Counted from the first letter of the stretch, positions 709 to 61,300 are shown. The stretch is DNA of 64,000 nucleotides from Pocillopora damicornis (GCF_003704095.1 NW_020844152.1:1-64000), one strand, 5' to 3'. Notes: generated from the letters alone by a model not told the origin. Numbers and translations are program-made.

Positions 709-1264
709 NNNNNNNNNNNNNNNNNNNNNNNNNNNNNNNNNNNNNNNNNNNNNNNNNNNNNNNNNNNNNNNNNNNNNNNNNNNNNNNNNNNNNNNNNNNN
801 NNNNNNNNNNNNNNNNNNNNNNNNNNNNNNNNNNNNNNNNNNNNNNNNNNNNNNNNNNNNNNNNNNNNNNNNNNNNNNNNNNNNNNNNNNNNNNNNNNNN
901 NNNNNNNNNNNNNNNNNNNNNNNNNNNNNNNNNNNNNNTGGACCTGTTGTAAATACTTATATCTGAGTTTTCATTGGGACGAATGACAGGTGACGGTCGC
1001 ATATGATCAAACTGAATAGAACAACGTTCATTTCAACTCACTTTTGGTCATTTGTTCGCTCGTTCTCTTTGCCACTTATCTACGAGTGATAAGTCTTCTG
1101 TATCATTGCCAGTAAATGTAAACATCACAACCCGCGCCTATAGAATAAAATGAGGATGCCTGTTNNNNNNNNNNNNNNNNNNNNNNNNNNNNNNNNNNNN
1201 NNNNNNNNNNNNNNNNNNNNNNNNNNNNNNNNNNNNNNNNNNNNNNNNNNNNNNNNNNNNNNNN

Positions 1265-3030
1265 TGTGATGTTAGCAGTGTTTTATCCAAGATTCACATT
1301 TGTCTTCCAATTGTTGATTTGTTTGGATATTTCCAGTCATTGGATTCATGTACAAAGGTAAAAAAGTTACATTTCTATTATAATTANNNNNNNNNNNNNN
1401 NNNNNNNNNNNNNNNNNNNNNNNNNNNNNNNNNNNNNNNNNNNNNNNNNNNNNNNNNNNNNNNNNNNNNNNNNNNNNNNNNNNNNNNNNNNNNNNNNNNN
1501 NNNNNNNNNNNNNNNNNNNNNNNNNNNNNNNNNNNNNNNNNNNNNNNNNNNNNNNNNNNNNNNNNNNNNNNNNNNNNNNNNNNNNNNNNNNNNNNNNNNN
1601 NNNNNNNNNNNNNNNNNNNNNNNNNNNNNNNNNNNNNNNNNNNNNNNNNNNNNNNNNNNNNNNNNNNNNNNNNNNNNNNNNNNNNNNNNNNNNNNNNNNN
1701 NNNNNNNNNNNNNNNNNNNNNNNNNNNNNNNNNNNNNNNNNNNNNNTTGCCAAAAGACAAAATTTAAACCTCCCACTGTGTTAAACCCTTTAACCCCCTA
1801 AGAGTGCTTAGCATCTAATTTCTCCACACAATATCACCCCTGAATCATCTATTAAGGTCAGGAGAATGAAGGAAATGATCACCAACTAAAGAAGCTCTCG
1901 ATATTATAAAAAAATAAATTCACCTTGTCAGCACCTTAGGAAATGTGTAGAGAACAGTATGGAGAATANNNNNNNNNNTGTTTATGTGTAAGGGGTTCAG
2001 TTGCGATCTCGTAGCTGTCACAGGGAGATCAGTAACAAACTCAGCTGTGAAGAACCCCTTCTTACATCTACAAGATAAATGCTTTGAGAANNNNNNNNNN
2101 TTTCCAAAAAATAAGGCAGTCTTTTTCTGGGGAAACCAGTGAGAAACCAACNNNNNNNNNNGTGTTCAACTTGAAGAATTCTTGGTATTTCAGTTCTCAA
2201 ACTCTAGGCTTTATTTACTAATTTTCAGGTGGTACTGTCCATCATGTGTGCTGGTAATGAACTCTTTTTCTGTATGTTGTATTTGGTTCATTTNNNNNNN
2301 NNNNNNNNNNNNNNNNNNNNNTCTTTAGTACTCATGTACAGATACATTTGTATTTCAAGAAAACATGCTTTTTTTTAAATTTGACACAGTGAAATGGCAG
2401 CTTTTGAGATAATTATACANNNNNNNNNNATTTCATTGAAAAAGCAGTTCAGGTCTGTTTTTTTTATTCATCAGTACCTCTTTCTTATCAGGTTTGAGGT
2501 AAGTTACAGATCAAGTTTTTCTACTTGGAATCATGGCCTGNNNNNNNNNNNNNNNNNNNNNNNNNNNNNNNNNNNNNNNNNNNNNNNNNNNNNNNNNNNN
2601 NNNNNNNNNNNNNNNNNNNNNNNNNNNNNNNNNNNNNNNNNNNNNNNNNNNNNNNNNNNNNNNNNNNNNNNNNNNNNNNNNNNNNNNNNNNNNNNNNNNN
2701 NNNNNNNNNNNNNNNNNNNNNNNNNNNNNNNNNNNNNNNNNNNNNNNNNNNNNNNNNNNNNNNNNNNNNNNNNNNNNNNNNNNNNNNNNNNNNNNNNNNN
2801 NNNNNNNNNNNNNNNNNNNNNNNNNNNNNNNNNNNNNNNNNNNNNNNNNAGATACTGTTTTTGTCAAAGTGTCTGTTGCTGGCAGCACATTTGGTCTGTG
2901 GGTAGCTCTAGCTTGGCTGACTCTTCCTATCTGCATACTGAAGCAGTCCATCAGTGTGATTCAGCTCACTGTGGCATGTATCAACACGGCAAGCTTGGAT
3001 GAGAGTGAAAGAGAAAGAGTAAACAAATGA
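1265..3030 (+). CDS. CDIPT: CDIPT 3' exons, on an oppositely oriented gap-bounded block
   Basis: 1265-1357 VMLAVFYPRFTFVFQLLICLDISSHWIHVQ (donor gt at 1358); 2229-2293 VVLSIMCAGNELFFCMLYLVH (runs into gap); 2870-3030 SVAGSTFGLWVALAWLTLPICILKQSISVIQLTVACINTASLDESERERVNK*. These match the C-terminal half of PI synthase (LDxxSHW, CAGNELF). One exon is probably hidden in a gap. Confidence 0.88.
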
Positions 3031-3409
3031 CTAGACATGGAGACTGGAGAACAACACAAANNNNNNNNNNACTAAAGCAATTATTTCACAACTGAAAATA
3101 ATCAAAAGGATTATTATATGGTGTGGAGTTTTTCCTAAATTTTCAAGGCTTTTTGTGACTAACACTTAACCCTTTAACTCTCATGAGTGACCAAGANNNN
3201 NNNNNNNNNNNNNNNNNNNNNNNNNNNNNNNNNNNNNNNNNNNNNNNNNNNNNNNNNNNNNNNNNNNNNNNNNNNNNNNNNNNNNNNNNNNNNNNNAAAA
3301 ATTGGCCCTGTCAGAGATTTGAAAGGTTATTAAATTATAAAATAAATATTCTCAAATCTCTCTTTTCCAGTCCTCATTTCAACAAAATTAACCATACAAG
3401 ATACTTCAC

Positions 3410-4692
3410 CTGTCTGTGAGCATATCTAGCATGGCACCAAACATTGTACCTAAGAAGTTAAAAAACATTTGAAAGTTTTGAGTGGAATAAAATAATAACT
3501 ATTTATTAAAGACAACTAGACCATTGGAATATTTGCTACATTTCTGGAAAGAGGTGTTAAAGCTGGCCAAATCTATTAACGGAGTATCTATGTTTGAGAG
3601 CTTGCCTATCACATACCCATCCCAAATATGCATGTGTATCCCCCCCCAAGATGGCAAAACGCACTGGACAGAATTAACGGTGGTGTTGATGTAACTTGCA
3701 CAAGTGGGTAAGAAGACAGTGGAAACGAGGTACCTACAATTAATTTTCCCACCTAGCTGTTTCGAAAAAATGTGATTCGTGATCACCATGCATTCTGCCA
3801 TTTTTTTAATCACATGAGGAAGAGCACTTTCTCCTGGTCACGCAAACTGAAAACAAGACTCTTTGCGACACATTAAAAGAGTCAAATATCCTGGCGATGG
3901 GAAATTACAGCTCTTAATGATCGAACTCACTTTGATTAAAGTATCGTGCTGCATACCCATCAAATTCATCTAACAGGACACTCAGAAGATACATGGATGC
4001 CGCCACGACACAGTTCGTCGGCATGAAGTAGAAGGATAATATGGCTAACACGATCCGTGCATAACCTGTCAGATCAGTAAAGTACCATTTGCTATTTGAA
4101 ATCTCCGAGACTGAAAACGATTATGGTATTACAACATTATTGAAAATTCTAAGTGAAACATGCTATTTCCACAATAAAACAGCTGTTACGAGGTAAAAAG
4201 TGCCAAGAAAAAAATTTACTCACCTATGATATTTGGAATAAATAGAAACACATTTTCAGCCATTGTTCGCAAAGGAAAGATTTAAAATATAGGTTAACTT
4301 GAACCAAACCTTCAACTGTACTCGGTCACGCTTAAGAACGCTTTCGGTCTGTTTTTTAGTTTCTCTCAGGGGTAGGTTAGTAAGAGGCGGTCGATGTTAC
4401 TGATTTAATATGACTCTTTTCAAGAAATTCAGAATTTAATTTTCTCGTCTCATTCAGAAAATAAAAAAAAATGTATTTCTGGTATTTCAGTTACAAAAAT
4501 AAAAAAAGGAAATAAAGAAAGATANNNNNNNNNNNNNNNNNNNNNNNNNNNNNNNNNNNNNNNNNNNNNNNNNNNNNNNNNNNNNNNNNNNNNNNNNNNN
4601 NNNNNNNNNNNNNNNNNNNNNNNNAAAAGTGCCAAGAAAAAAATTTACTCACCTATGATATTAGGAATAAATAGAAACACATTTTCAGCCAT
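3410..4692 (-). CDS. CDIPT: CDP-diacylglycerol--inositol 3-phosphatidyltransferase (PI synthase), exons 1-3
   Basis: Exon 1 4263-4224 (MAENVFLFIPNII-G; duplicate at 4692-4653), exon 2 4065-3931 (GYARIVLAILSFYFMPTNCVVAASMYLLSVLLDEFDGYAARYFNQ), exon 3 3449-3410 (STMFGAMLDMLTDR). All junctions are GT-AG and in phase. The CDP-alcohol phosphotransferase motif DxxDGxxAR...GxxxDxxxD is intact. Confidence 0.93.
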
Positions 4693-5121: not shown

Positions 5122-7681
<2,560 letters not shown>

Positions 7682-12900: not shown

Positions 12901-15900
12901 AGATAAATTGAAGCACTTCAAAACAACTCTGGATCACACTTGCAATTCTAATAACAAGATAGTAGTCTCAAGGAACCCATCATTTTCAAGTCTACCTGTG
13001 CAGCTCCAGACTCTCTCCTCATTCTCATCACTTCTTGTGCAGCTTTAGTTAAAAACATTGCTGACTTTGATCGTTCAGTACTTTCCGACCTCAGTATCAG
13101 CTTCATCACCAACCGAAACAACCGTGCCATAAATGGAAACACCACTGCCAAAAAATTAACATTTACAAGAAATTGTACGAAAGGAAAGGAAAACACAGCA
13201 TCAAATACATGCAGTCCCTATCCAATTTACCTAATCTAAAATTTTCTCATAATTGCAACTGTTAAAACAAAATATAAGCAGAATGTTAAGTGTCTTATGA
13301 TCAATCAAACTGGAGATCAGGACAAACGGGCAATCCTCAAAATGACAGACTAGTTCTCTCCCTACTGACTGGTTTGTTCTTCTTTATACAATAACTTTCC
13401 AGTCTGAAATAATTCTGATGTCCATTGTTTCTTGGGTTTCACAATCAACACTTAGTGTAATAGTTCTTAGTCTGATAACAGTTCATCATTTACTGACAAG
13501 ATTAATTACAGGTAATTTTTCATTCATGTTCCTGACTGCATCCATAGATTATTTGATAACAAATTGTTTGCTGATCACTGGACTAAAGCAACACACAAAT
13601 GATCAACTTACTTAAAATAAATGAAAGAGGAGGCTGTTTAAAAAGAACCTCTGCATTTGGAGTGTACTGCTCATTGGCATCATTCTGTATGTCTGCCTGG
13701 ACACCAAATGCTGTAGCCAAGATTACTTCCATGGTGAATTTTCCATAAGTCCTTCAAGACATATTTATTTGCTGCTTAGAAGCTTAGACTTACTGTCAAA
13801 AAATGGTGACTGTTAAAAAAAACCACTCTTATTAACCCTCATATTCACTTAAAAGGACCCTTTTTTCAACACCTTTTTGTGGGGTCTTAGTAAGGAAGGG
13901 CAGTTTAACACCTTAATTAAACACTGGATCATAGGCTGCTATATTTTGGCTAAACAAACTTACTTACAAAACGACTACAAAGTGAGTTTTCCACCAGAAA
14001 GCTCTTGCTTTACCTAACTAAGAAATCACTTTTTATAAAATCTATAGCTCATCCCTAATTAAATCTCAGTTAGCCTTGCTTTCTTAAAGTAACAACAGTA
14101 GTAATGCAATAAAGAGAAAAAGTAATCACAGCAGTAAAACAAATAAAATTATGTGAACCTTTCTGCAGCAGGGTATTCGACAAGAGAGAGAGAAGAGTAA
14201 ATAAATTTTGACAAGTCATTAGGAGGGTGCAAGCCCCTAAGCAAAAGAAGGAATGCTTAAAGAGCGATGAACATATTCAAGTCATTTATAACACCCAGTG
14301 ACTCCCATCAGGAGAAGGGGTAATTTGTTTTAATGATCATGGCCTGTTATCAAGACATACTGCTGCACAGCTTGATAGTGTGATGATTTCATTTGAGCTT
14401 GTCTACAACAGAGTGCTGCATGTACATGTACCTCCACATGTCCACTATCTCTCCTGTCTTAGCAATTTGTTCAAGTTTTTTGCCCAGTGTCTTTGCTGAC
14501 TGGTGAACCAAAGGGGTAATCTGTAAAGAGAAAGACGAAAGTCAATGTCCAAGTTCAGCACAAGATACAGCCTGGTGTTCATGTACCAATAAAAAGAATT
14601 CTAGATTCTGAAATGATCTTAACATCAGTATTATTTGAAGGATATTCTTCATTGTTCTTTCATGAACATAAAAAAGATGAAACTAAATAGAATATCCTTT
14701 TTTGCCTTCCAACTAAAGATGACACAAACCTGTTTAAGTTTCAGTGCACTGAATGTTGGAGTGATTGTAACACGGATTCTTCTCCATTCTTCATCTTCAA
14801 GTGTTAACAAGCTCTTGTTTTCAAATATAGACTGACTTCCAATACTCTGTAAACACATTTCAACACAGAACATCACATCAATCACAACTAAGAAAAACAT
14901 TATTGACTGATAGAATGTTCAGTGAAGATAAAGAGCAGACCAAAATAGACACTTGATGTATTACACTATCTTCACTATGACCATAAATGTGTTTATCATG
15001 TACTTACAGAAAGTGGTCTGTTTGGGAATTTACTAAATTCTTTCACAGTGATCTGCTTGATTAGATCAACATCCGAGATCACATAAGTTGGTTTACGACC
15101 AAGATAAACCCTACAATTATAGACAAGAAATATTTTAATGCTTGACTGCATCTGTCCTTGAATGGCCAGACTTGTAACTTAATGGTTGACTGCCTTATGT
15201 TATCCCCAACTTTTTTCTGTGAAAACTTCATCTTAATTCTAATGATAAAGCCAACCATATCGTTTTCCTTAGCCTTTGACAAAACCTATTAATTTGAAAT
15301 ATGACACTTCTTTATCCAGGAACTCTAAACCAGACAGTGCTATGACAACATTTCCTCCAAATTAGTTTAAGAAATAATAATAACAATTTGAATTCATAAA
15401 GTGCAAATCACATGAATGTATGATCAAATGCACTGTTAACTTGGTCAAATATAATTTACAACATATTAATATGTCTAACACAAGGATTATATCAGCTACT
15501 TGCTATGTTTACAAACAAAGAAAATTCTTATTCATTTTCAGCCTGTTAAAACAGGTCCTCGTATTTTTACTCAGGAAAGTTTAGGATTTTTTATGCAGGT
15601 AGCATAGGAAAAAGGTGCCCCTAGAATATTTGGACCCAACCCTAGATCCATGACATCATTGTCCCCAAACCCTGTAAAAATTTGACTAACCCTGCTACTC
15701 TTCCATACTTCTCAGCCACTTCTTTGTCAAACAAAAACATTTGATGGGGCTGAAATCAAAGCACATGATAAATAACCAATTAATGCTGAAAATGCAAAGA
15801 ATTATTTTTGAGGCAAGTTACATGTTATTGGTACCATTCATCAAACAGGGTTCAGGGATATTAACATGTNNNNNNNNNNNNNNNNNNNNNNNNNNNNNNN

Positions 15901-16981
15901 NNNNNNNNNNNNNNNNNNNNNNNNNNNNNNNNNNNNNNNNNNNNNNNNNNNNNNNNNNNNNNNNNNNNNTGATGGCTTACGTCCTCCCTTGCATCTCCTA
16001 TTCACATTCTCAGGTAAGTAACCCTCCCAAAACAGTGGATGAGATTCAGGTAGATGCTGATAGAAGCACAGCATAGCATTTACAAAATACAGGTTCTTCT
16101 CGTTTGTAGGGCGTCGTGTGACATTTGCAATCCTGGCTCCTGAACGATCACTGCAGCTTGATCAAAAGCCATTTTAAAAACGACCGCATTAATACATTTA
16201 AAAGATGTTGAACAATCTTACCGTACGCATATTCAGCAAAGACATAAAACGATAGCCTTTACGATCTAAACTCTTGGTCTCCTAATCAGTTTTAAATTGA
16301 GGGGAGGGGCAATCAGTTCAAGAGTAGTACGCATTTGTATAATTTACTTGAAGAAATTAAGCAACACCTAGAGCGAATATAAATTAAGCTAGCCTGATTC
16401 CCCGGTGAAAACGGTCAATAAACAAGCACGGCCCTTTGTTAGCATCCGAACTGGGTAAATAATAGCAACAACGGTTTTGCAACACTCTGCGAAACATGTG
16501 CGTCGAAAGTTGGTAATTTGGAATTGTTATGTTACACATCATATGTCCCTCAAAAAATTTTGCGCAAACGTTTTTTAAACTTTCTCTTGGGAGGATTTCA
16601 GCTGCCGAAAGAGATTGAAAACAATTCGAGCGCCGAACTTTGTAGGGCAAACAAAGTTCAGTGAGGTCAAAACAAAATCAAAGTCTTCGTAAGAGAAGTG
16701 CAGGCCTTCAATTTTTCAAGCGGGTAGCGGGAAAATGATGCTTCACATGTATAGCTACTGATTCAATCGATTTAAAATTTTCAATTTCGCTATAATTAGC
16801 CACATCATTAAATGCTTTTACGTGTAGCTCGAAAGGTCAACGAAGCAAATCAATAACCTGTGTACAGATTTATGCAAGACCCAGATAAGCGAGTAACTTA
16901 CCAAGCGACCAGGAAAACGATTCCAATGACTAATGCAATCCATAAATGTTCAAATTCTGCAACATTTTTAACAAAATCCAT
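9907..16981 (-). CDS. Cytochrome P450, CYP3 clan (CYP3A-like)
   Basis: Exons 16981-16902 (TM anchor), [exon 2 presumably in gap 15870-15969], 15749-15691, 15110-15008, 14846-14730, 14520-14432, 13751-13612, 13144-12996, 12696-12469, 11618-11530, 11118-10981, 10668-10506, 9984-9907. Motifs: WxxxR (WRRIR), I-helix AGYETT, ExLR (EALR), PERF, heme FGTGPRSCIG. Confidence 0.95.
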
Positions 16982-18274: not shown

Positions 18275-21200
18275 ATGGCCTTACGACTTCACAACACCAG
18301 ACTAGTTGATGGCGGAATCTGTTGTTTTAATTTTATCTTTGAGGAGTTTTCCAGTATTGGAGAGAAAGTCTACTCAAGGCCCTTCTTTTTTGCCGGATCT
18401 CGATGGCGTTTACAAGGTGGAGTGAAAGGAGGACAGTTTGGTGTATTTCTCCGCTGGCTTGGAGGTGGGCAGCATACTGATAAAGTTAAATGCAATATCC
18501 GTTTCTCTGTGGAAGTTATCAACAACAGAGACCCTTCAAGCTCTGTACGGGTAGGAAATATGACAGAACCAGATGAGTTCCCAAGAGTAGCCTTCGGCAT
18601 TGGCTGGAGCAAGTTACTGTCTGTGGAGGAAATCGAGAGGCCCAATTCGGGCTTTCTGGACGATAACTCTTTGTTCCTGGAAGTCAAATGTTGCATGGTG
18701 CACTTTTTATTTGAGGATAAGCTGGTGATTAATTTGTCATCTCGTACTAGTTACGTGTCCAGTTCAAAATTTTCTCTGTTCGGCGAAGAATGGTACCTTG
18801 TATTGTATCCTAGAGGAGAACCCAAGAGTGACAATTCTGAAAGCCAAAAACAAGAGCACGCTGCCGTGTATCTTCACAGAGAAGAACCAGGCGTGTTAAG
18901 ATTCAAGGCCACTTACTCCATATTTGTGCGAGGAGGCCGCGAGACGCAAGTCAGTCATCATTTCTGCAACAACAACGCCAGCACAGCATTTGGCATTGAG
19001 AAGTTTGCACGCACCAAAGATCTTAAGGCTGTCTCCAAAGGAGGCTTGGTTTCCATTGGGGTCAAAATCACCAGCATCGAGCCTTACTATTACTTTGGGT
19101 TTGACACACAGGGTTGGTCGCCTCCCAACAAACTTGGAGAAGGATGTTCTATAAACGACGTGTTCCCTTTGTTGCTAAAGCCGTGCTCGAATGACAAGAA
19201 AATGTTGGATTTTAGTCTGATGTTGGACCCTGGGCCAAAATTTGAACATGCAGAACTGGAGGATAGTGCTTACTACATGAAGATCCTTTGGAGTGTCAAT
19301 GTGGTGTGTGTTAAAGATTTTAACAGAAGTGTAACCGTCAACTCTTGGGATGTCGTTGGTAAGAGCGCTTTCTGTCACAGCCAGGATGAAATGACAATGA
19401 ATACAACTCTGGAGCTAAACGAGGTACTCTTCTATTCATTTAATAATCATAAATGTTTAAGCCACCCTACCTTGTACTCCTTCTACAAATCGTTTCAGCG
19501 GTACTGGACGTTTAGGCATTTCGATTCCAACGTTTCTATTCGTGCCACTTAATCTTGTGCGTATTGGAAACGGTTTCATTCCTTTTATCCCTTATTTGAC
19601 TTTGATTCATCATAGGAGTAGACTTTTCGCAACCCTCTACTTCACTGCATCTCTGTTACATCTTTTGAGCGTTCTTATAATTAAACTTCATAAAATCAGG
19701 AATTTGGGGGGGCGGGGGTCAGTCCAAATTTAGCGAAGAGTACGATCTCTAGACGGTTGAGACATTTTGTTATTGTTTACAGCGAATGGTTCTACCAAGG
19801 TATTCAGACAGTTCAGCCCCTTTATCCCCGAAGCAAAATGCAGCGAGACGATTCCATCAAATAAGAAATATAATCCCATCCAAATTAACGATATTGAAAC
19901 AAAAATGCAATGTACAGTACTACGACAAACAAATCATTGAATGTTTTATTGCTCCTTCCCCTAGGTGTTGAACCCGCATAGCCCCTACTTGGATGACGAG
20001 AAGAATTTGGGAGTTCGCCTTGTCATGGCAAATGCAAATGAAGTTTATGATCCACTCCTGATCAACTCTGACAAACACAGCGTGGCAAAGTTGAGAGAAA
20101 TGAACGCTCAGACAAAAGCTGCTGTGGAAAATTTCTGGTAAGATTAGTGTTGCAGGAAAAGCCTTTACAAAGAGGCAATCGACTTTTTTTCCTCACGAAA
20201 ACTTGTAAAAAAAAAATTAGAGAATCGCATGTTTTGAAATTTATTTACCTAAAAACAACGCAGCCGTGGTGGAAACGCATAATCAAATAAATATTTAATT
20301 GTTTGTCAGTTACGGTATCAGGTGGATTAGATAAAGATCATTACCATCCACTTATTTCATAGGAAGGATCAATTAGACGAAATTTATTCTGAGAAAGATA
20401 GAATAATAGCTGACAAAGAAGAAGAAATCGCAGCAAAAGAAGAGGAACTAAACCAAAAAGAGGCTGCTATTCAGGCACTGGAGAACGAGATTACTGAGAG
20501 CAATGAGTATCTGGCAGAAATTGAGAGCACTGTTGATGAGGTATGGCAAGCATCTATGCTGTGAGCTAAGGACATCAAAGAAAAATAACAAAAATCCCAC
20601 TCTTTAGGAGCCCAAAGAATATTCCACTCCACTTCCTACAAAATGTTTAAGGGAAATATTGCTGGTTTATGCTCAAACGAAAACACATGCGAACCCACGC
20701 ACAGGTAGCATGATCACACAGCCACGGAACAACCTGAAAGATAAGTTAACATCGCTTCCTCTTCTGAAAATGTTTCTATGTTATGATCTCTTGGTTTTTC
20801 CTCTGTACAGATTGACGGCAAGAAAGTGAGCAGTATAAAGGATCTCGTACAGGAAGCTCAACCAGATGAAGAAGAACTTACTAAGCAACAAGAAGTTGGA
20901 GAAAAATTGAAGGCATTTTTAATGGCGAGTGTTCATTAACATTGCCTTAACACTTAATATGTGAAACACTCAATGTGTCTTAATTCCAGTTTTCTTAAGC
21001 ACTAGCGAAAAAATTCCCCACGTGAAGGACTAAAGAATTGATTTATTTTTGTATGACCTAACAGGATCGCCTCCCATTCAGCGTCAGCCGTATTTCAGTT
21101 GTTGGAGCTGCAGGACAAGGAACTACTATCAAAGGCAACAAGGAATTAGAACTGGCCGTGTTTGTCAAAGGTTAAGTGTATGTTTAAATTCTCCCTTCGC

Positions 21201-24041
21201 CATCAAGGAGTCTATCGTTTGAAAATTTTAAAATCTGACCACCGATCCCTTATCAGTGATAAAAAACTAAGCTATTTACAAATTCCTGAGGTCAAAACTT
21301 AGCTAAGCATGAGGTCAAGAAGACTGTTGTTACATAACTGTGACAAAGCAACAGCCATGTGAAAAGAACTGACAAAGTCCCATTTGTTCATTAGATCTTC
21401 CTAGAACTGAGCATAAAAGTTGGTTGCCAGCCATAGTTTTCACTATCAAGACCCTGCTGAAACAAGAAGGATCTAAACCAACAGAGAGCACAGATGACAA
21501 CCAAACGACTTCAACACTGCCACCATGTTCAGACTTTGTTACTACCTCAACATCTGTCAAGTTCAAATGTGATAGTGTGGATGTAACAATTGACCCAATG
21601 AATGACTGGGAGCAAATGGGAGGATTCGTTGGTTTATATAAACAGTGCCTTTCCCAACCAGCAGATGCTCAGCCATTGTAAGTGCACCCACAAGACATTT
21701 AAAAGAGGCCCCTCCCATTTGAGTAACACCGTGGCAACTATTGAAAGGCCCCTGAACTGAGATGTCATAAGAACTATGAAAGTAACTTAAACAAAGTGTT
21801 TTGTCGAGAAATTCTATGATTGATCATTAAGTTAATTTATCCACTAATGAGATACGTTATAGTGATGTCATAATACTAATGTAAGTCATTTGTCAGCTAT
21901 GGACCTAGCCGACTCACTGGGTAAATATCAAATCGTTTCGTATACTTTATTATCTGAGCATTTCATAACAATGTAACTTCCTTTTAGGATTCAAACTCAG
22001 TTCTTATTGTCTGGCAGTAAAAGTCATCAATAAAGATGTTTGATAACAATGAACCAAAAACCCACAACTGACAAAACACAAAGGTCATACAGTGGAATTT
22101 TTTTCTAGGGGACTCTCTGAAAACTAGAAAAATTGACCCCATACATTTAGGGGACACACTCAGGACTTGAAAAATTGAGCGCCTCTTTCTATCTATTTTC
22201 ATCTTTATCTAGCTACTTATAAGAGAATCAAAGATTCAGGAGAATTACATTCTCCATCACATCACACATTAAATTGTAAAAATGTTTGCAGACTTGATCA
22301 TAATTCAAGGCACTCAAGAACACTGAGCTGATTAAAAATTTGTATGGAAACTTTCGTAAAGTTCAGCATACTCAACAGCTTATGCATATGTCAGAAATCA
22401 TTTTTTCCTTTCTCTTGTTTTAGTTATAACATCTGCGCCTGTGAAAGACAGACAGAATTTATTTCTATACAGAATCCAAAGGTATTGTTTGGACTGTGAT
22501 TCTATGCAGGGTTTTTCTTTATCTCTCTGACTTTTTCTCAATATTCAGACAACTCAACACTCTTTGGGAAGGTATATGAACATGGTATCTCTACAAAAAC
22601 TGTATAGATTTTGTTTCTCCCTTTTTTTTTTGCATCACTGAAACTTGAAAATAAATTTTATTTAGATAAAAGAACCTCTACCCTGATACCAAAAAGGTTT
22701 CACTTGGAAAAAAAAAATCAGAACAATGTTTCTATTTCTACATTAGTGCAAGGAGCTGATCCGTATTGTCAAGGTGTGGAGTAACAGCGTTGCCTGGCGG
22801 AATACCTCATCCACACCCAGTCAGTACCTGTTGTGTCTGCTGGTGACTGCAGCTTATCAAGTGGTTCACGAGTAAGTATTTTACAAGTTCAAAATCACGC
22901 TTGTTTCTGGTATTAACAACATGCAAAATACTTTTCACAAAAATGTATATTTTGAGGTGTTTTGGGGTTAAGAGATTAATCAATATGGAATGATACAAAT
23001 ATACAAACTCTTGAATGAGAAATTTACCAAGTTACTGTATAAAAGTTCCTGTAAAAGAAAATTTGCCAATTCTTTCCTTAGAGTCATCAGTTTTCTAAAA
23101 GAAAATTATCAAAAAGTGATTGTGCAATGGCTGCTTAAACATCTTAGTAAACGCAAGCTTAAAGTTTGTTCCTTTTTCATTCCATACAAATATTAAAATG
23201 CAAAGCAGTTGTGAACACCTTTATATATCTACATACCATGTGCTTCAATGTGTTATTATGCAATGGTTGAATTCTAAAGGGGAGGTGATCAGTCTCAAGC
23301 AGTAAGAGCAGACAAAGATGTTTTCTTGGAACTTGCTGACATGGTTGGAGATGAATCTTTAGAGTAAGTTTAATAGATACCAGTACACACAACTTTTTTT
23401 AGAAAAAAAGTATTTCATATTGCATGATATTAAGAGAAGACAGCAACAGCATTTCTAAAAGTTGATAAATCTATCTATAAAATATTTCAAATTATTAGAT
23501 ACAGACAATACACATCTTTAGAAATGTGGCTTCCCTTTATCTAACTATGAAAATGGATGAATTTTTAAGCAGAGCTTATTTACTTATTTATTTATCTAAA
23601 AAAATTTAGGCTGAAGGGATTTACACTTGGGTCACCACATGACATAACATTTCATTCCTCCATTTGTTAAGTTAAGTTGGTCAGTCAGTTGGAAGTTAGC
23701 TGGCAGTGAGTTGATCAGTGACTCAGAAACTCATTGATATTCATTCAGTTTTCCCATTACTCTGTCACCCATCCATCTATCCAGCCATTCATTCAATAAT
23801 TGACTCTTTAATTTAAAGATATTTCTGACACAATAGTTTTCATCTCATTTTATCCAGAGTCTACTGGAATGAATATTACCTGGTAGAAGACTATCCCAGG
23901 GAAAATTTTCCAGTTCTATTTCAACTTCCCATTGTTCAAGACCCTGCCATTCCAACACATAATGTGGCATCTGATGGACTAGAGGACTGGGCACAATTCA
24001 GGAGAGAACTGTCAAAATGGGTTGCAAAATTAACTCTTTGA
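18275..24041 (+). CDS. MATH(x3)-coiled coil-OAS-like nucleotidyltransferase fusion protein, 817 aa
   Basis: Exons 18275-19423, 19965-20137, 20363-20540, 20811-20924 (GC donor), 21065-21170, 21395-21677, 22424-22481, 22747-22871, 23280-23363, 23858-24041. All phases are compatible, total 2454 nt with no internal stop. MATH motifs: VYSRPFFFAGSRWRL...FGIGWSKLL and SSKFSLFGEEWYLVLYPRG...AVYL...FGIEKF; the third MATH is degenerate. OAS motifs: VSRISVVGAAGQGTTIKGNKELELAVF, CERQTEFISIQNPKCKELIRIVKVW, PSQYLLCLL, VYWNEYY, PIVQDPAIPTHNVA. Confidence 0.88.
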
Positions 24042-58355: not shown

Positions 58356-61300
58356 TACTTGTACCATAAGATATTTGTTCTGAACTGTATTATAATATTG
58401 TTATACAACCTAGTTATTTTCTAGAGTAGCATGGATAGAAGTTATGATAGTATACACAATTGAAATGTTGTGTAATAAAACAGAACAGGATGCAGAGAAG
58501 AGATTATTTCAATGCATACGATGTGAGCAAGCTTGTCCATATGATTATATTCTTTTTTTCCTTTGCCGTTGATATTTTTTATTTGTAGGATAGAAATTTA
58601 GTTCTTTGTCAAACTATTGCTGTAAGTGCATCACTGAAATTTTCAGTGAGACATTTGTCGAAGTTGGAATGTCAGGAAATTATGACTTCAATATAGGCAC
58701 GGGTTTGAGGCAAGACCTCATAACTGAGGAAGTTTTGGTATCTCCACAAGACAATTATGCAAAGATTCATGTAAGTTCTGGCAGATAGCTATGTATATAC
58801 AACAGAATGGAAATCAAGTCATTATTTGAGTTAACCACAGCCCTAGAAATTCTAGAACTTCTGCTTAACAGATATAATACTTTCACACTTTCAAAGCATA
58901 CTATTGTGAAATATTTTCTCCACACTCACTCACCCCTCCCCCCCTTACTAGAATATACTTTAAGCCATGTTAGGCTGAACTTTGTATCCATACTACAGAA
59001 AGCCAAATCATTGGAGAAGTGTAAAATAGTAGCAAGGGAATTTTGCTATCTTTTTGTAACAAATTGAAGATAGGTTTTGGGTTTAATGGGAAAGTATTAC
59101 ATGTAGTTTATTTTATGTATATGATTTATACCTATAATTGTGTGAAATTTCCATCAACCTTTCCTGCAGTACTTGATCATTGCATAGAACTATTATGAAT
59201 AGTAAAAGATAAGAACAGTGATTTATCCAAGATCTTGTTGCTGCCTTAGAGGAATTAATCCAAACAAGAGTATTGTTGATGAAAACTGACTTCAACTTCA
59301 ATTCATTTTACGATCCTGTAGTAATTTTCAATAGATGTTAATGCATGGTTACTAACCCTTATAAACAAATGGTCCTGGATTTGGGAAAATATTCTCATGC
59401 AAAAAAAACAGATGAAGCTACAGTTTTTCTCTAAGGATCATCTAGTTGCAATGTTTTGAAATTAATAGTTTTAACTGTATGTGTTAGTGTAGGATTTGTA
59501 GAAGGGAAGTGACTAATTATTTTTTTGCCTGGGTTGATGATTATTTGATCATCATGGTTGCATTCTGTGTAACCTAGTTATTCTATACTTGTGTCAAAAG
59601 TACACTACACATTTCACTTTACAATATTTTCCCAACTCAGTCTTTTGTAATAAAAGTTACCATTGTTGTTACTTCAATGCAAACTTGTGATTGTGATTGT
59701 TATTTCTCTAAGTTTAAGTTATGATTACTTCAAGAGAATATTTTAGTGTTGTTTTAATATCAATGAATTTATATTTATATGATGAGCTGAATTATGAAAG
59801 GAATTTGATTGGTACTCATGATCTATTGCAGGACAGATGTACAGATAATGCCATCGAAAACAACATTCTGCCTTTATATCTTGTAAAACAAATAGATTTC
59901 ATGTTGTTGTGGGTCTCAGAATAATCTAAGAACATCAGTGACTTACTTGGCTGCACTTTGTGTGCTATTTTTTTTTCTGGCCACATTTTGACTTCATCTG
60001 TGATCTATCAATGAATAGACACACACAACATGGAATCTACAAGCGAAAGTGACGATTGGCCATAATTGTGACTGTCAGTAAATTTGTCAATGGTTTCAAT
60101 ACAACAATGAAATGTTTCTCCTATTTTAATCCATCACTACCAGTTATTTTAATTATGTACATATAAGGGAATAAAATTTGTATAGATTACATCATTGTCT
60201 TCTATTTGCCTTTGCTTTCTGTGTGAGGAGATTTAAAGGATTGGACAGTTCTTTAAGAATTCTTCCTTTAAAAAATATTTTGTGAAATTCTTTAACTTTT
60301 GAAACATACCCTCTGATTGCGTTGAGATTTTTTCCAATATCTTTGCTTCANNNNNNNNNNNNNNNNNNNNNNNNNNNNNNNNNNNNNNNNNNNNNNNNNN
60401 NNNNNNNNNNNNNNNNNNNNNNNNNNNNNNNNNNNNNNNNNNNNNNNNNNNNNNNNNNNNNNNNNNNNNNNNNNNNCCATAGACTGAATCTTTTCAGTAT
60501 TTTTAATTAATATAACTACATCTAGAGAGGTTTTTAGGAGTGTTAAGTATTTATACTTGACACTAATATTTGTTTAGGAGCAATGTCAATTAAAAAAATT
60601 TGGCCTTCTCTAATATTCCCTGTCTTGAAACATACTTGGATTAGAGTTCGTATCCGAGTTAATGCACATCTACCCCTCCCCAAATCCATAATTTGCCCTA
60701 AATTCATATTGGTTGAATTTTGTTGGTTTAGTTAGGGAAGGTGGGAGCATAGTTGCCTAGATACTGACATTGATCCTTTACCTCGATATGTTGACCTCAA
60801 GGTTTCACTTCAAGCTGAAAGTAAGTTATTCCTATAAAAAATTGGCTCAAAATGTTACAAAAAAGCTCCTAAATTGTGTTTACTTTTCTTGAGGTAAGAA
60901 AAAAAGAGAAAATAAGGTAAAAATTGTTTGAATGCCTACCATTAATCCTAACTTTACAAATGAATAGAAAAGATAACTGCTTTCTCTGAATGTGATTTTT
61001 GTACATTTCTAGTTTGACCTAAACAATATGTCTAACAAAATGATCGCGTTTGTACAGATGTGTGTTTATATTTACATTATGCCATATAGGGGACTGTAAG
61101 ATAACAAAATATTTTTTACAATGTAAATATGATAAATAAAGTTTCACCTTGATATTTTAAATACTTAATAACTTAGAACAAGCTGATGGTATCTAGAACT
61201 GAGGAGTCATCACTCAAATAAATAACTAGTGATATTCTGAAACTGTTATTTTCTTAAAGAAACCAAAATATTTTTTAAATGGAAATAAATAGTTCTACCT

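Follow-up and report, generated by a model that had tools for sequence, protein, structure and literature searches.

Canonical OAS1 is a dsRNA-activated 2-5A synthetase composed of a nucleotidyl-transferase (NTase) domain and an OAS1_C domain. The MATH domains of TRAFs, SPOP and USP7 bind short linear motifs, and the coiled coil located next to the MATH domain of TRAFs forms trimers. OASL signals through dsRNA binding despite its inactivity (PMC4446440). Within the family it falls in OASa, a group confined to jawed vertebrates, while the OASs of invertebrates are placed in a separate group, OASb (PMC10400998). Lineage-specific fusions of OAS, including TRADD-N-OAS, are described for cnidarians and deuterostomes in the searched text of Kaur et al. 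2021 (PMC8195603). A literature search found no paper on a MATH-OAS architecture, in agreement with an earlier note on the DNA analyzed here, whose author knew of no characterized protein of this kind.

The window, i.e. the whole analyzed stretch of 64,000 nucleotides of Pocillopora damicornis DNA, contains a locus of this architecture (positions 18275-24041, + strand). Ten exons (2454 nt) encode a protein of 817 aa, with the lone stop codon in the terminal position. This independently built exon model has exactly the length and exon number of the ORF given in the earlier note. The initiator M1 is unchanged across 15 aligned relatives, and eight introns have GT-AG boundaries, the remaining one (intron 4) being of the GC-AG type. 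The features of the locus are as follows:

Exon 1: 18275-19423, + strand; aa 1-383; start codon ATG at 18275 and the MATH array
MATH domain 1: 18308-18712, + strand; aa 12-146; Pfam MATH_2, E 3.8e-12
MATH domain 2, divergent: 18740-19099, + strand; aa about 156-275; second MATH_2 stretch of exon 1
Third beta-rich domain: 19112-20090, + strand; aa about 280-425; straddles the junction of exons 1 and 2 over intron 1 (19424-19964)
Exon 2: 19965-20137, + strand; aa 384-441; end of the third domain and start of the helical linker
Exon 3: 20363-20540, + strand; aa 441-500; helical linker with acidic character and heptad periodicity, possibly a coiled coil
Exon 4: 20811-20924, + strand; aa 501-538; linker end, followed by the presumed N-terminal OAS helix
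Intron 4: 20925-21064, + strand; GC-AG, donor GCGAGT; the junction on which the fusion hinges
Exon 5: 21065-21170, + strand; aa 539-574; OAS P-loop strand and catalytic positions 1 and 2
Exon 6: 21395-21677, + strand; aa 574-668; core part of the N-lobe of the NTase, divergent in sequence; the third catalytic position is expected here
Dispersed repeat: 21795-22080, no strand assigned; inside intron 6 and outside the protein; at least 9 other genomic copies with 90-95% identity
Exon 7: 22424-22481, + strand; aa 668-687; helix, by eye the OAS1 region with R195/K199
Exon 8: 22747-22871, + strand; aa 688-729; first block of OAS1_C
Exon 9: 23280-23363, + strand; aa 729-757; no family match on its own
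Exon 10: 23858-24041, + strand; aa 757-817 and the TGA stop codon (24039-24041); last block of OAS1_C

All nine splice joints were found in poly(A) RNA contigs, which derive from three or four separate studies of corals; the check proposed earlier, RNA junctions across exons 1-10, was thus answered by overlapping contigs, not by full-length single molecules. The joints 19423/19965, 20137/20363 and 20540/20811 were each detected in four RNA runs, and 21677/22424, 22481/22747, 22871/23280 and 23363/23858 are likewise present in RNA contigs. The joint of exons 4 and 5 (given as 20923>21064 with 2 ambiguous letters, which is compatible with 20924/21065) was found in runs X1, X2 and X16, representing three studies. 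It is carried by (i) a contig of 1891 nt (X2 record 13) containing the 5′ UTR and exons 1, 2 and 3, to which exon 4 and 107 nt of exon 5 are added from depth and side lengths, (ii) a contig with exons 3-4-5(-6) (X1 record 3) and (iii) a contig with exons 4-5(-6-7) (X16 record 10). The extra RNA depth within intron 6 is due to the dispersed repeat; one X1 contig skips 21776-22078.

The same ten exons are arranged colinearly and on the same strand in at least four other assemblies, all from coral-type genomes; four were compared. Three of these (L009, L010 and L011) share about 75-88% aa identity per exon with P. damicornis, and the fourth (L004) is much more distant (36% identity in the MATH exon, 47-59% in the OAS exons). 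The identity of exon 2 is 82-90% in L009 and L011, about 62% in L010 (over a longer match) and 45% in L004; the sequence of exon 7 is conserved across L009-L011, exon 9 is 93% identical in L010 and L011, and exon 6 has 11 database ORFs with 60-77% identity. The dN/dS ratios, which are rough due to saturated dS but far below 1, lie near 0.05-0.07 in the MATH exon and near 0.09-0.12 in the OAS exons; by this measure, both halves of the gene are under purifying selection. The gene is present as a single copy, and an OAS1_C profile scan of the whole genome found exon 10 as its sole match.

These data bear on the question of whether neighboring MATH-linker and OAS genes were joined artificially, by read-through or by chimeric assembly of contigs. 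The non-canonical (GC) donor of exon 4 would fit such an artefact, as would run X4, in which intron 4 has contig depth, the spliced joint of exons 4 and 5 is absent, and the contig depth is greater over the OAS exons than over the MATH exons. However, this joint was recovered in three studies, and the contigs link exons 1-5, 3-6 and 4-7. Moreover, the translated exon 4 has no in-frame Met ahead of its last residue, M538, and for this reason it is not an independent start; exons 4 and 5 offer no in-frame start upstream of this residue. In the orthologs of L009-L011 the intron follows an identical codon and keeps its position and phase, with canonical GT donors (GTAAG) and a CAG acceptor, and the ten exons are still together in the distant L004. 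An artefact is therefore very improbable, and the locus is one real, expressed gene joining MATH and OAS exons, as had been claimed previously, and not two neighbors. Retention of intron 4 introduces an in-frame stop codon at 20937-20939, and the intron 4 depth in run X4 indicates that a truncated isoform may co-exist with the fusion transcript.

Comparison with the MATH profiles (PF22486 and PF00917) gave a MATH_2 match of 70.5 bits (cut-off 32) for exon 1, in two stretches, and the AF2 model of this exon has a pLDDT of 85. MATH domain 1 is modeled as a clear MATH fold, the fold of an eight-stranded beta sandwich: Foldseek retrieved the TRAF-like domain of USP7 (E 4e-9, TMt 0.80), and for model residues 12-146 VIA-align yielded Z-scores of 15.4 for SPOP, 15.2 for USP7 and about 13 for TRAF1/2/5/6, with an rmsd of 2.3 over 126 residues to the SPOP MATH domain. 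MATH domain 2, with seven predicted strands, is weaker but supported (MATH_2 E 8.4e-7 when scanned alone; 29.7 bits, slightly below the 32-bit cut-off). The third beta-rich domain contains six strands (pLDDT about 80 in the exon 1 model) and, when aligned in register, resembles domains 1 and 2 only weakly. It has no Pfam match, hhalign against a three-MATH protein was not significant, and folding of this domain alone gave a pLDDT of 52, which is too low for use. It is possibly a degenerate MATH domain. Thus, the three MATH/TRAF domains proposed earlier are reduced to one well-defined and one weaker domain, with the third lacking a Pfam or significant hhalign match.

The linker is an uninterrupted acidic helix of about 80 aa, with no Pro or Gly over aa 425-502. 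In exon 3, one heptad column has the residues Y-I-I-L-I-I-L-V, Lys predominates in the second core column, and the net charge is -15; Pfam returned weak, sub-threshold matches to many coiled-coil families. As in TRAFs, a MATH fold adjoins a heptad-periodic helix. However, TRAFs contain a RING and TRAF zinc fingers, and neither is present in the coral protein (RING and zinc-finger profiles matched no exon, and exon 1 matches MATH families only). The coiled coil of TRAFs precedes a single C-terminal MATH domain, whereas in the coral protein the MATH domains are repeated and N-terminal, and the helix comes after them. The coral fold is also slightly nearer to SPOP/USP7 (Z about 15) than to TRAFs (about 13). 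Given this order of modules, the absence of a RING and TRAF zinc finger, and the mostly Lys second core column, the TRAF-like oligomerization suggested earlier was not upheld.

The C-terminal third of the protein is assigned to the OAS family on the basis of sequence matches of three exons (5, 8 and 10), which align colinearly and retrieve OAS1, OAS2 or OASL either first or exclusively. Exon 10 matches OAS1_C (PF10421) positions 110-169 with 28.6 bits (cut-off 19.9) and retrieves OAS2 (E 8.9e-5), OASL (0.0071) and OAS1 (0.018) from the PDB. Exon 8 matches OAS1_C positions 44-79 (E 0.0058, 16.7 bits), and its profile search retrieved OAS2 (E 0.001) and aligned OAS1 205-241. The alignment of exon 5 with human OAS1 51-82 is weak (E 0.066 with a single sequence, 0.025 with a profile); OAS1 chains rank first, followed by weaker unrelated matches. 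Sequence tools found no OAS match for exons 6, 7 and 9, which were placed by position and by-eye motifs, and none for exon 4 in a profile scan; exon 6 has no PDB or Pfam sequence match, and NTP_transf_2 gave no Pfam match when the exons were scanned singly. The OAS assignment of the earlier note is supported by the above-cut-off match of exon 10 and the colinearity with OAS1; its alignment of every OAS block is backed by sequence tools in exons 5, 8 and 10, and by position and by-eye motifs in exons 6, 7 and 9.

The predicted NTase center is degenerate. Pol-beta NTases are characterized by an hG[GS] P-loop and a [DE]h[DE] motif in the N-lobe. The P-loop of exon 5 reads G-A-A-G-Q-G where OAS1 has G-S-S-G-K-G, and the carboxylates are E-L-E where OAS1 has D-A-D. 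The changes S63>A, K66>Q and D75>E (OAS1 numbering) occur in all five genomes; the D77 equivalent is Glu in P. damicornis and Asp in the four others (E-L-D or E-C-D). The G-S motif, G-A in P. damicornis, is wholly gone in L004 (A-A). The stretch of exon 6 in which the third carboxylate (D148 in OAS1) is expected, V-[D/N/K]-V-[T/V/A], varies over 13 sequences, and no tool aligns this exon to OAS. The equivalents of K213 and Q229/Y230 are retained in exon 8. In OAS1, Ser63 coordinates the donor ATP; the inactivity of human OASL is partly due to Thr152 in place of the third carboxylate (PMC4446440).

It is probable that the coral OAS domain has lost catalysis, and the degenerate active site makes the earlier proposal of a protein acting without making a second messenger the likelier reading. 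Pol-beta NTases permit Glu as a carboxylate, and together with the kept K213 and Q229/Y230 equivalents this means that there may be residual or altered catalysis. An OAS domain that is still an enzyme would produce 2′-5′ oligoadenylates or another nucleotide signal, with metals held on Glu-x-Glu/Asp and another acid, and with the MATH domains localizing or regulating it. The invariable Glu/Asp at carboxylate positions 1 and 2 (five of five genomes), the conservation of K213 and Q229/Y230 and the strong purifying selection on the OAS exons speak for such an enzyme, as do reports that invertebrate OASs are widespread and that a sponge OAS is active (PMC6307210). Nevertheless, we consider it unlikely: Ala and Gln replace Ser63 and Lys66 in every ortholog, L004 is devoid of the G-S motif, no conserved acid is evident at either candidate third position, human OASL is inactive and shows a comparable change (PMC4446440), and RNase L is unreported in cnidarians (PMC6307210).

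A non-catalytic OAS domain could still bind RNA. Of the OAS1 groove residues K42, K60, R195 and K199, we compared K60, R195 and K199. In the tool alignment of exon 5, K60 is replaced by Val and the K66 equivalent by Gln. The R195/K199 equivalents are Thr/Ser in P. damicornis and L009-L011, according to a by-eye ungapped extension from exon 8, as exon 7 has no tool match. The classical dsRNA groove thus appears not to be conserved at the compared positions, two of them aligned by eye, and dsRNA is a rather doubtful ligand of the coral domain. Pseudo-NTases with non-sensor roles include DZF domains and MiD51, and the OAS-like domain might similarly be no nucleic-acid sensor but a protein-protein or dimerization module, or a small-ligand pocket, within a pure scaffold. 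The Val at K60, the Thr/Ser pair kept in L009-L011 and the net acidic character of the OAS part in all five genomes (-4 to -11) are consistent with this. Against it, the comparison spans just three groove positions, two by eye, and the OAS domain of human OASL, although slightly negative, binds dsRNA via a local basic groove (R45, K63, K66, R196 and K200) (PMC4446440). A pure scaffold seems to us improbable.

We lean towards a non-catalytic adaptor, in which a MATH array (two domains verified, a third possible), an acidic helix and a degenerate OAS domain are combined according to an OASL-like logic. In such an adaptor, binding or sensing would fall to the dead OAS-like domain, and the docking of short linear motifs in partners from signaling or the ubiquitin system to the MATH domains; the helix would separate the two modules and may oligomerize them. 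We regard an immune or adaptor role of the coral protein as an evenly balanced proposition.

Among the known systems, USP7 and SPOP provide the top sequence and structure matches of MATH domain 1, but the coral protein has no USP catalytic, ICP0-binding or BTB domain, and the identity is just 17-25%. Its exons 5, 8 and 10 are colinear with OAS1 51-82, 205-241 and 270-327, and OAS1_C is matched above the cut-off; it differs from OAS1 in S63A, K66Q, D75E and D77E, an apparently non-conserved third Asp, a central N-lobe exon with no detectable OAS1 sequence similarity, and an N-terminal extension of 500 aa. As in TRADD-N-OAS, domain shuffling in early-branching animals has placed OAS on an adaptor domain from the death/TRAF signaling network, but the searched text of Kaur et al. 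2021 (PMC8195603) lists TRADD-N fusions and does not mention MATH-OAS.

OASL and the coral protein both combine, in one chain, a catalytically incomplete OAS-family domain with an interaction module of the ubiquitin/TRAF world. OASL carries C-terminal tandem UBLs, whereas the coral protein has N-terminal MATH domains and a long helix; no exon matched a ubiquitin-like domain, and the coral ORF ends directly after the OAS1_C match. The catalytic center of OASL is altered at the third carboxylate (Thr152) (PMC4446440) and that of the coral protein has Glu-type residues at the first two; the groove residues of OASL are basic, but the aligned coral positions (two by eye) are not. Since the OASa group is restricted to jawed vertebrates (PMC10400998), the likeness would be convergent. 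The MATH-OAS gene resembles an independent, uncharacterized counterpart of vertebrate OASL.

The MATH and OAS parts of the gene at 18275-24041 (+) are joined in spliced RNA, and the features of the locus considered here are as follows.

18275-24041 (+): ten-exon gene (E1-E10) for a MATH-linker-OAS protein of 817 aa
16779: single ISRE-like site, about 1.5 kb upstream of the gene
20925-21064: intron 4, with GC..AG ends
21795-22080: dispersed repeat of about 285 bp in intron 6, with at least 9 other genome copies (90-95% identity)
5176-6141 (+): single-exon ORF of 321 aa with two cytidylyltransferase-like (PF01467) stretches (E 3e-47)
709-4624, 15870-15969 and 60351-60476: 14 stretches of N, from assembly gaps or masking, closely spaced over the initial 4.6 kb of the window

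The DNA of the window is AT-rich and eukaryotic, and the RNA runs containing it are labeled coral or marine metagenome. In the window ORF reading, the ATG at 18275 opens an ORF of 425 aa. Ten exons with consensus splice sites were read from the sequence (the frames were checked by script), and one boundary was corrected using RNA contigs. The contigs join E4 to E5 at 20923>21064 with two ambiguous letters, which places intron 4 at 20925-21064; an alternative GT donor for E4, six bases downstream, is ruled out by this joint. With the corrected boundary the CDS comprises 817 codons and one stop, exactly the length that the earlier note had claimed for a ten-exon ORF. A motif scan revealed the ISRE-like site and no NF-kB-like site near the gene; both results are uninformative.

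RNA contigs assembled from poly(A) or oligo-dT libraries (four runs from four studies) contain all nine splice joints, and the critical E4/E5 joint was present in three of these studies (runs X1, X2 and X16). Three contigs span this region: (i) X2 record 13 (1891 nt), aligned on the 5' UTR, E1, E2 and E3, whose depth of 83.8 and side lengths of 115 and 107 show that E4 and the leading 107 nt of E5 belong to it as well, (ii) X1 record 3, containing E3-E4-E5 and extending into E6, and (iii) X16 record 10, containing E4-E5 and extending into E6 and E7. The overlapping spliced contigs form an unbroken chain, single full-length molecules being beyond what contigs can prove. Moreover, M538, the final residue of exon 4, is preceded by no in-frame Met in that exon, leaving the OAS exons without an evident independent start. 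The fusion proposed in the earlier note is thus borne out at the level of one transcript. The RNA contig data do not show the alternative, in which transcripts would stop no later than 20939 and the OAS exons would be transcribed from another start site.

In run X4, intron 4 shows depth and no contig contains the spliced E4/E5 joint. Were this intron retained, an in-frame stop at 20937-20939 would yield a MATH-linker protein devoid of the OAS part; a truncated isoform of this kind may therefore exist beside the full-length form. The contig depth of X4 over the OAS exons (21065-24041) is about 65-160, i.e. 3-5 times that over exons 1-3 (29), and the gap is smaller in the other runs. This excess could reflect either 3' bias of the libraries or an additional internal start, between which contigs cannot discriminate. 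High RNA depth within intron 6 is explained by the dispersed repeat rather than a hidden exon. In one X1 contig, 17 other letters stand between 21775 and 22079, and this contig looks like an allele without the repeat insertion.

The Pfam scan of exon 1 identified two stretches matching MATH_2 and MATH. Domain 1 (aa 12-146), scanned separately, gave an E-value of 3.8e-12. An AlphaFold model of the exon 1 product, built with 15 sequences, reached a pLDDT of 85, and its residues 12-146 were matched by Foldseek and VIA-align to the MATH domains of SPOP and USP7 with Z of about 15 and rmsd of 2.1-2.4 over about 125 residues; TRAF1/2/5/6 ranked below these (Z about 13). Domain 2 (aa about 156-275) scored 29.7 bits, slightly below the Pfam cut-off. 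Two MATH domains in the exon 1 region are therefore verified. A third one (aa about 280-425) is probable: this segment has six strands at a pLDDT of about 80 in the exon 1 model, and their predicted order parallels that of domains 1 and 2, while exon 2 would supply the last strand. The segment gave no Pfam match, an i-E of only 0.15 with an HMM built from domains 1 and 2, short in-register similarities to these domains in hhalign, and an E-value of 0.28 in hhalign against a three-MATH protein; folded alone, it reached a pLDDT of 52. Thus, of the three MATH domains originally claimed, two stand and the last is less certain. Neither a RING or zinc finger nor a BTB or USP domain turned up in Pfam scans of all exons.

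The MATH array is followed by a linker lacking proline and glycine between aa about 425 and 502, within which a long helix may safely be inferred. Exon 3 encodes 16 Glu among 59 residues (net charge -15). One of its heptad columns is Y-I-I-L-I-I-L-V, and Lys predominates in the other core column; the Pfam matches of this exon, to assorted coiled-coil families, were all sub-threshold, and a complex prediction with two copies of the helix scored 0.14, where the mark is 0.32, a result that speaks on neither side of self-association. A coiled coil is plausible, and these features would also allow a single stable helix. The oligomerisation envisaged for the protein is not upheld.

The OAS region was searched exon by exon; the joined sequence has no reference. 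Exon 10 passed the curated cut-off of Pfam OAS1_C, which it matched at positions 110-169; exon 8 matched positions 44-79 of the same profile. Against solved structures, exon 10 matched OAS2, OASL and OAS1, a five-genome profile of exon 8 matched OAS2 and OAS1 (residues 205-241), and exon 5 matched OAS1 residues 51-82, its top matches being OAS1 and then weaker, unrelated chains. All matches of exons 8 and 10 were OAS proteins. The single-exon E-values are modest; the matches of exons 5, 8 and 10 are in colinear order, which provides sound sequence evidence that the C-terminal part belongs to the OAS family, in agreement with its original assignment. No OAS match was obtained for exons 4, 6, 7 and 9 in per-exon Pfam searches, nor for exon 7 alone against solved structures or exon 6 against the PDB, either alone or as a 13-sequence profile. 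Exon 6, corresponding to the central N-lobe, is strongly conserved among corals and diverged from vertebrate OAS.

Alignment with human OAS1 revealed that G62-S63-S64-G65-K66-G67 is replaced by G-A-A-G-Q-G, and D75-A-D77 by E-L-E. In none of the five genomes compared are the equivalents of Ser63 and Lys66 Ser or Lys, and in one ortholog locus (L004) a P-loop Gly is lost as well. The first carboxylate is Glu in all five genomes; the second is Glu in the window and Asp in the other four. The region of exon 6 expected to hold the third carboxylate reads V-[D/N/K]-V-[T/V/A]-x-x-P, a column that is unconserved in any register. The equivalents of OAS1 K213 and Q229/Y230 are retained. In OAS1, coordination of the donor ATP involves Ser63, and OASL owes its inactivity partly to Thr at position 152 (PMC4446440). 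On balance, we consider that synthetase activity has probably been lost, which fits the suggestion in the earlier note that no second messenger is made.

The residues assessed in the RNA groove also look altered. OAS1 K60 corresponds to Val in the tool alignment, and the equivalents of R195 and K199, placed in exon 7 by OAS1 numbering, are Thr and Ser according to an ungapped backward extension of the exon 8 alignment; the same two residues occur in three orthologs (L009-L011). In each of the five genomes the OAS part carries a net negative charge, which is not decisive, since the OAS domain of OASL is slightly negative and binds dsRNA via a local groove (PMC4446440). The classical dsRNA-binding mode is thus not supported by the aligned residues, and the proposed RNA sensing could not be upheld.

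Screening the whole library by HMMER with exon 1 yielded only 29 relatives, none of them full-length and most being ORFs about 400 aa long, the size of one exon. Searches with exons 6 and 10 found only close coral-type relatives (60-90% identity), among them 11 ORFs with 60-77% identity to exon 6. Ortholog loci in four other coral-type assemblies were compared by local tblastn of the spliced protein against their contigs. On three long contigs (L009, L010 and L011), a MATH ORF of roughly 400 aa lies 4-5.5 kb upstream of the exon 6 ORF on the same strand, and all ten exons are present with about 75-88% identity. The E4/E5 intron of these loci follows the same codon and has canonical GTAAG donors, so the GC donor of the window is a local variant of a conserved intron. 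In L004 the MATH exon is only 36% identical, and all downstream exons are colinear on the same strand (identities: E2 45%, E5 47%, E6 56%, E8 59%, E10 51%). Directly upstream of this ortholog, and on the same strand, is a very large sacsin-like gene (L004:1-8265; PF25794 SACS, then a HEPN ORF), with no equivalent seen upstream of the gene in the window.

In comparisons with L009-L011, the MATH exon gave a dN/dS of 0.05-0.07 and the OAS exons one of 0.09-0.12; these figures are rough since dS is saturated, yet they are clearly far below 1, and the gene is under strong purifying selection. Among the best candidates scored in a scan of the genome (234,350,878 bases, 4,393 contigs), the MATH exon, exon 6 and exon 10 were each single copy (a lower bound), exon 10 was the only OAS1_C match, and no paralogues were found in the window or genome. 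A separate locus contains a 445-aa MATH-array ORF (L007:5976-7313), 27% identical to exon 1, which adjoins transposon ORFs (DDE_1, RVT_1). No OAS exons were found within 10 kb downstream of it, so the OAS fusion is not universal in that MATH family, and the array module may also occur without OAS.

OAS genes are present in many invertebrates with no reported RNase L or interferon (PMC6307210, PMC10400998). The only OAS1_C gene found here has a degenerate site, yet it is selected and expressed, which points to a non-enzymatic task for OAS outside vertebrates, wired to MATH. MATH domains are docking modules in signaling of the TRAF, SPOP and USP7 type. It is conceivable, if rather improbable, that corals independently evolved an OASL-like single-chain sensor-adaptor, acting independently of RNase L and free of a second messenger, with a dead OAS domain sensing the ligand and the MATH array recruiting partners. 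The inactive domain would recognize viral dsRNA or another danger ligand via a non-canonical surface, ligand binding would cluster the protein through the helical linker, and the clustered array would form a platform directly recruiting TRAF-interacting or ubiquitin-system proteins. If true, this would constitute an OAS pathway without RNase L and second messenger in an animal lineage lacking interferon and RNase L, and a tractable entry into coral antiviral signaling, of relevance to work on coral disease and bleaching. Should the protein instead be a scaffold without any function involving nucleic acids, it would add another example of domain shuffling, which is frequent among cnidarian immune genes. 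The function of the MATH-OAS protein is inferred, and cnidarians often carry immune fusions confined to single lineages.

In the literature searched on MATH-OAS proteins, on oligoadenylate in Pocillopora and on OAS pseudoenzymes of cnidarians, this architecture is not described, and the earlier note likewise knew of no characterised protein of this kind. Kaur et al. name OAS as one fusion partner of TRADD-N in animals including cnidarians (PMC8195603), so shuffling of OAS onto adaptor domains is already a known theme; the searched text of that paper does not mention MATH-OAS. The gene is a conserved, expressed and selected fusion of a MATH array with a probable OAS pseudo-enzyme, and we found no counterpart described. 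The product cannot be classed as a TRAF: it lacks the RING and zinc finger, and its helix follows the MATH array, whereas in TRAFs the helix precedes MATH. In function it would be most like OASL, by analogy of a probably dead OAS domain and an interaction module in one chain. OASL, however, has UBL domains, which the coral protein lacks, and its clade is restricted to jawed vertebrates (PMC10400998), which places the coral protein outside the OASL family; should it prove to act as a sensor-adaptor, its likeness to OASL would be one of convergence.
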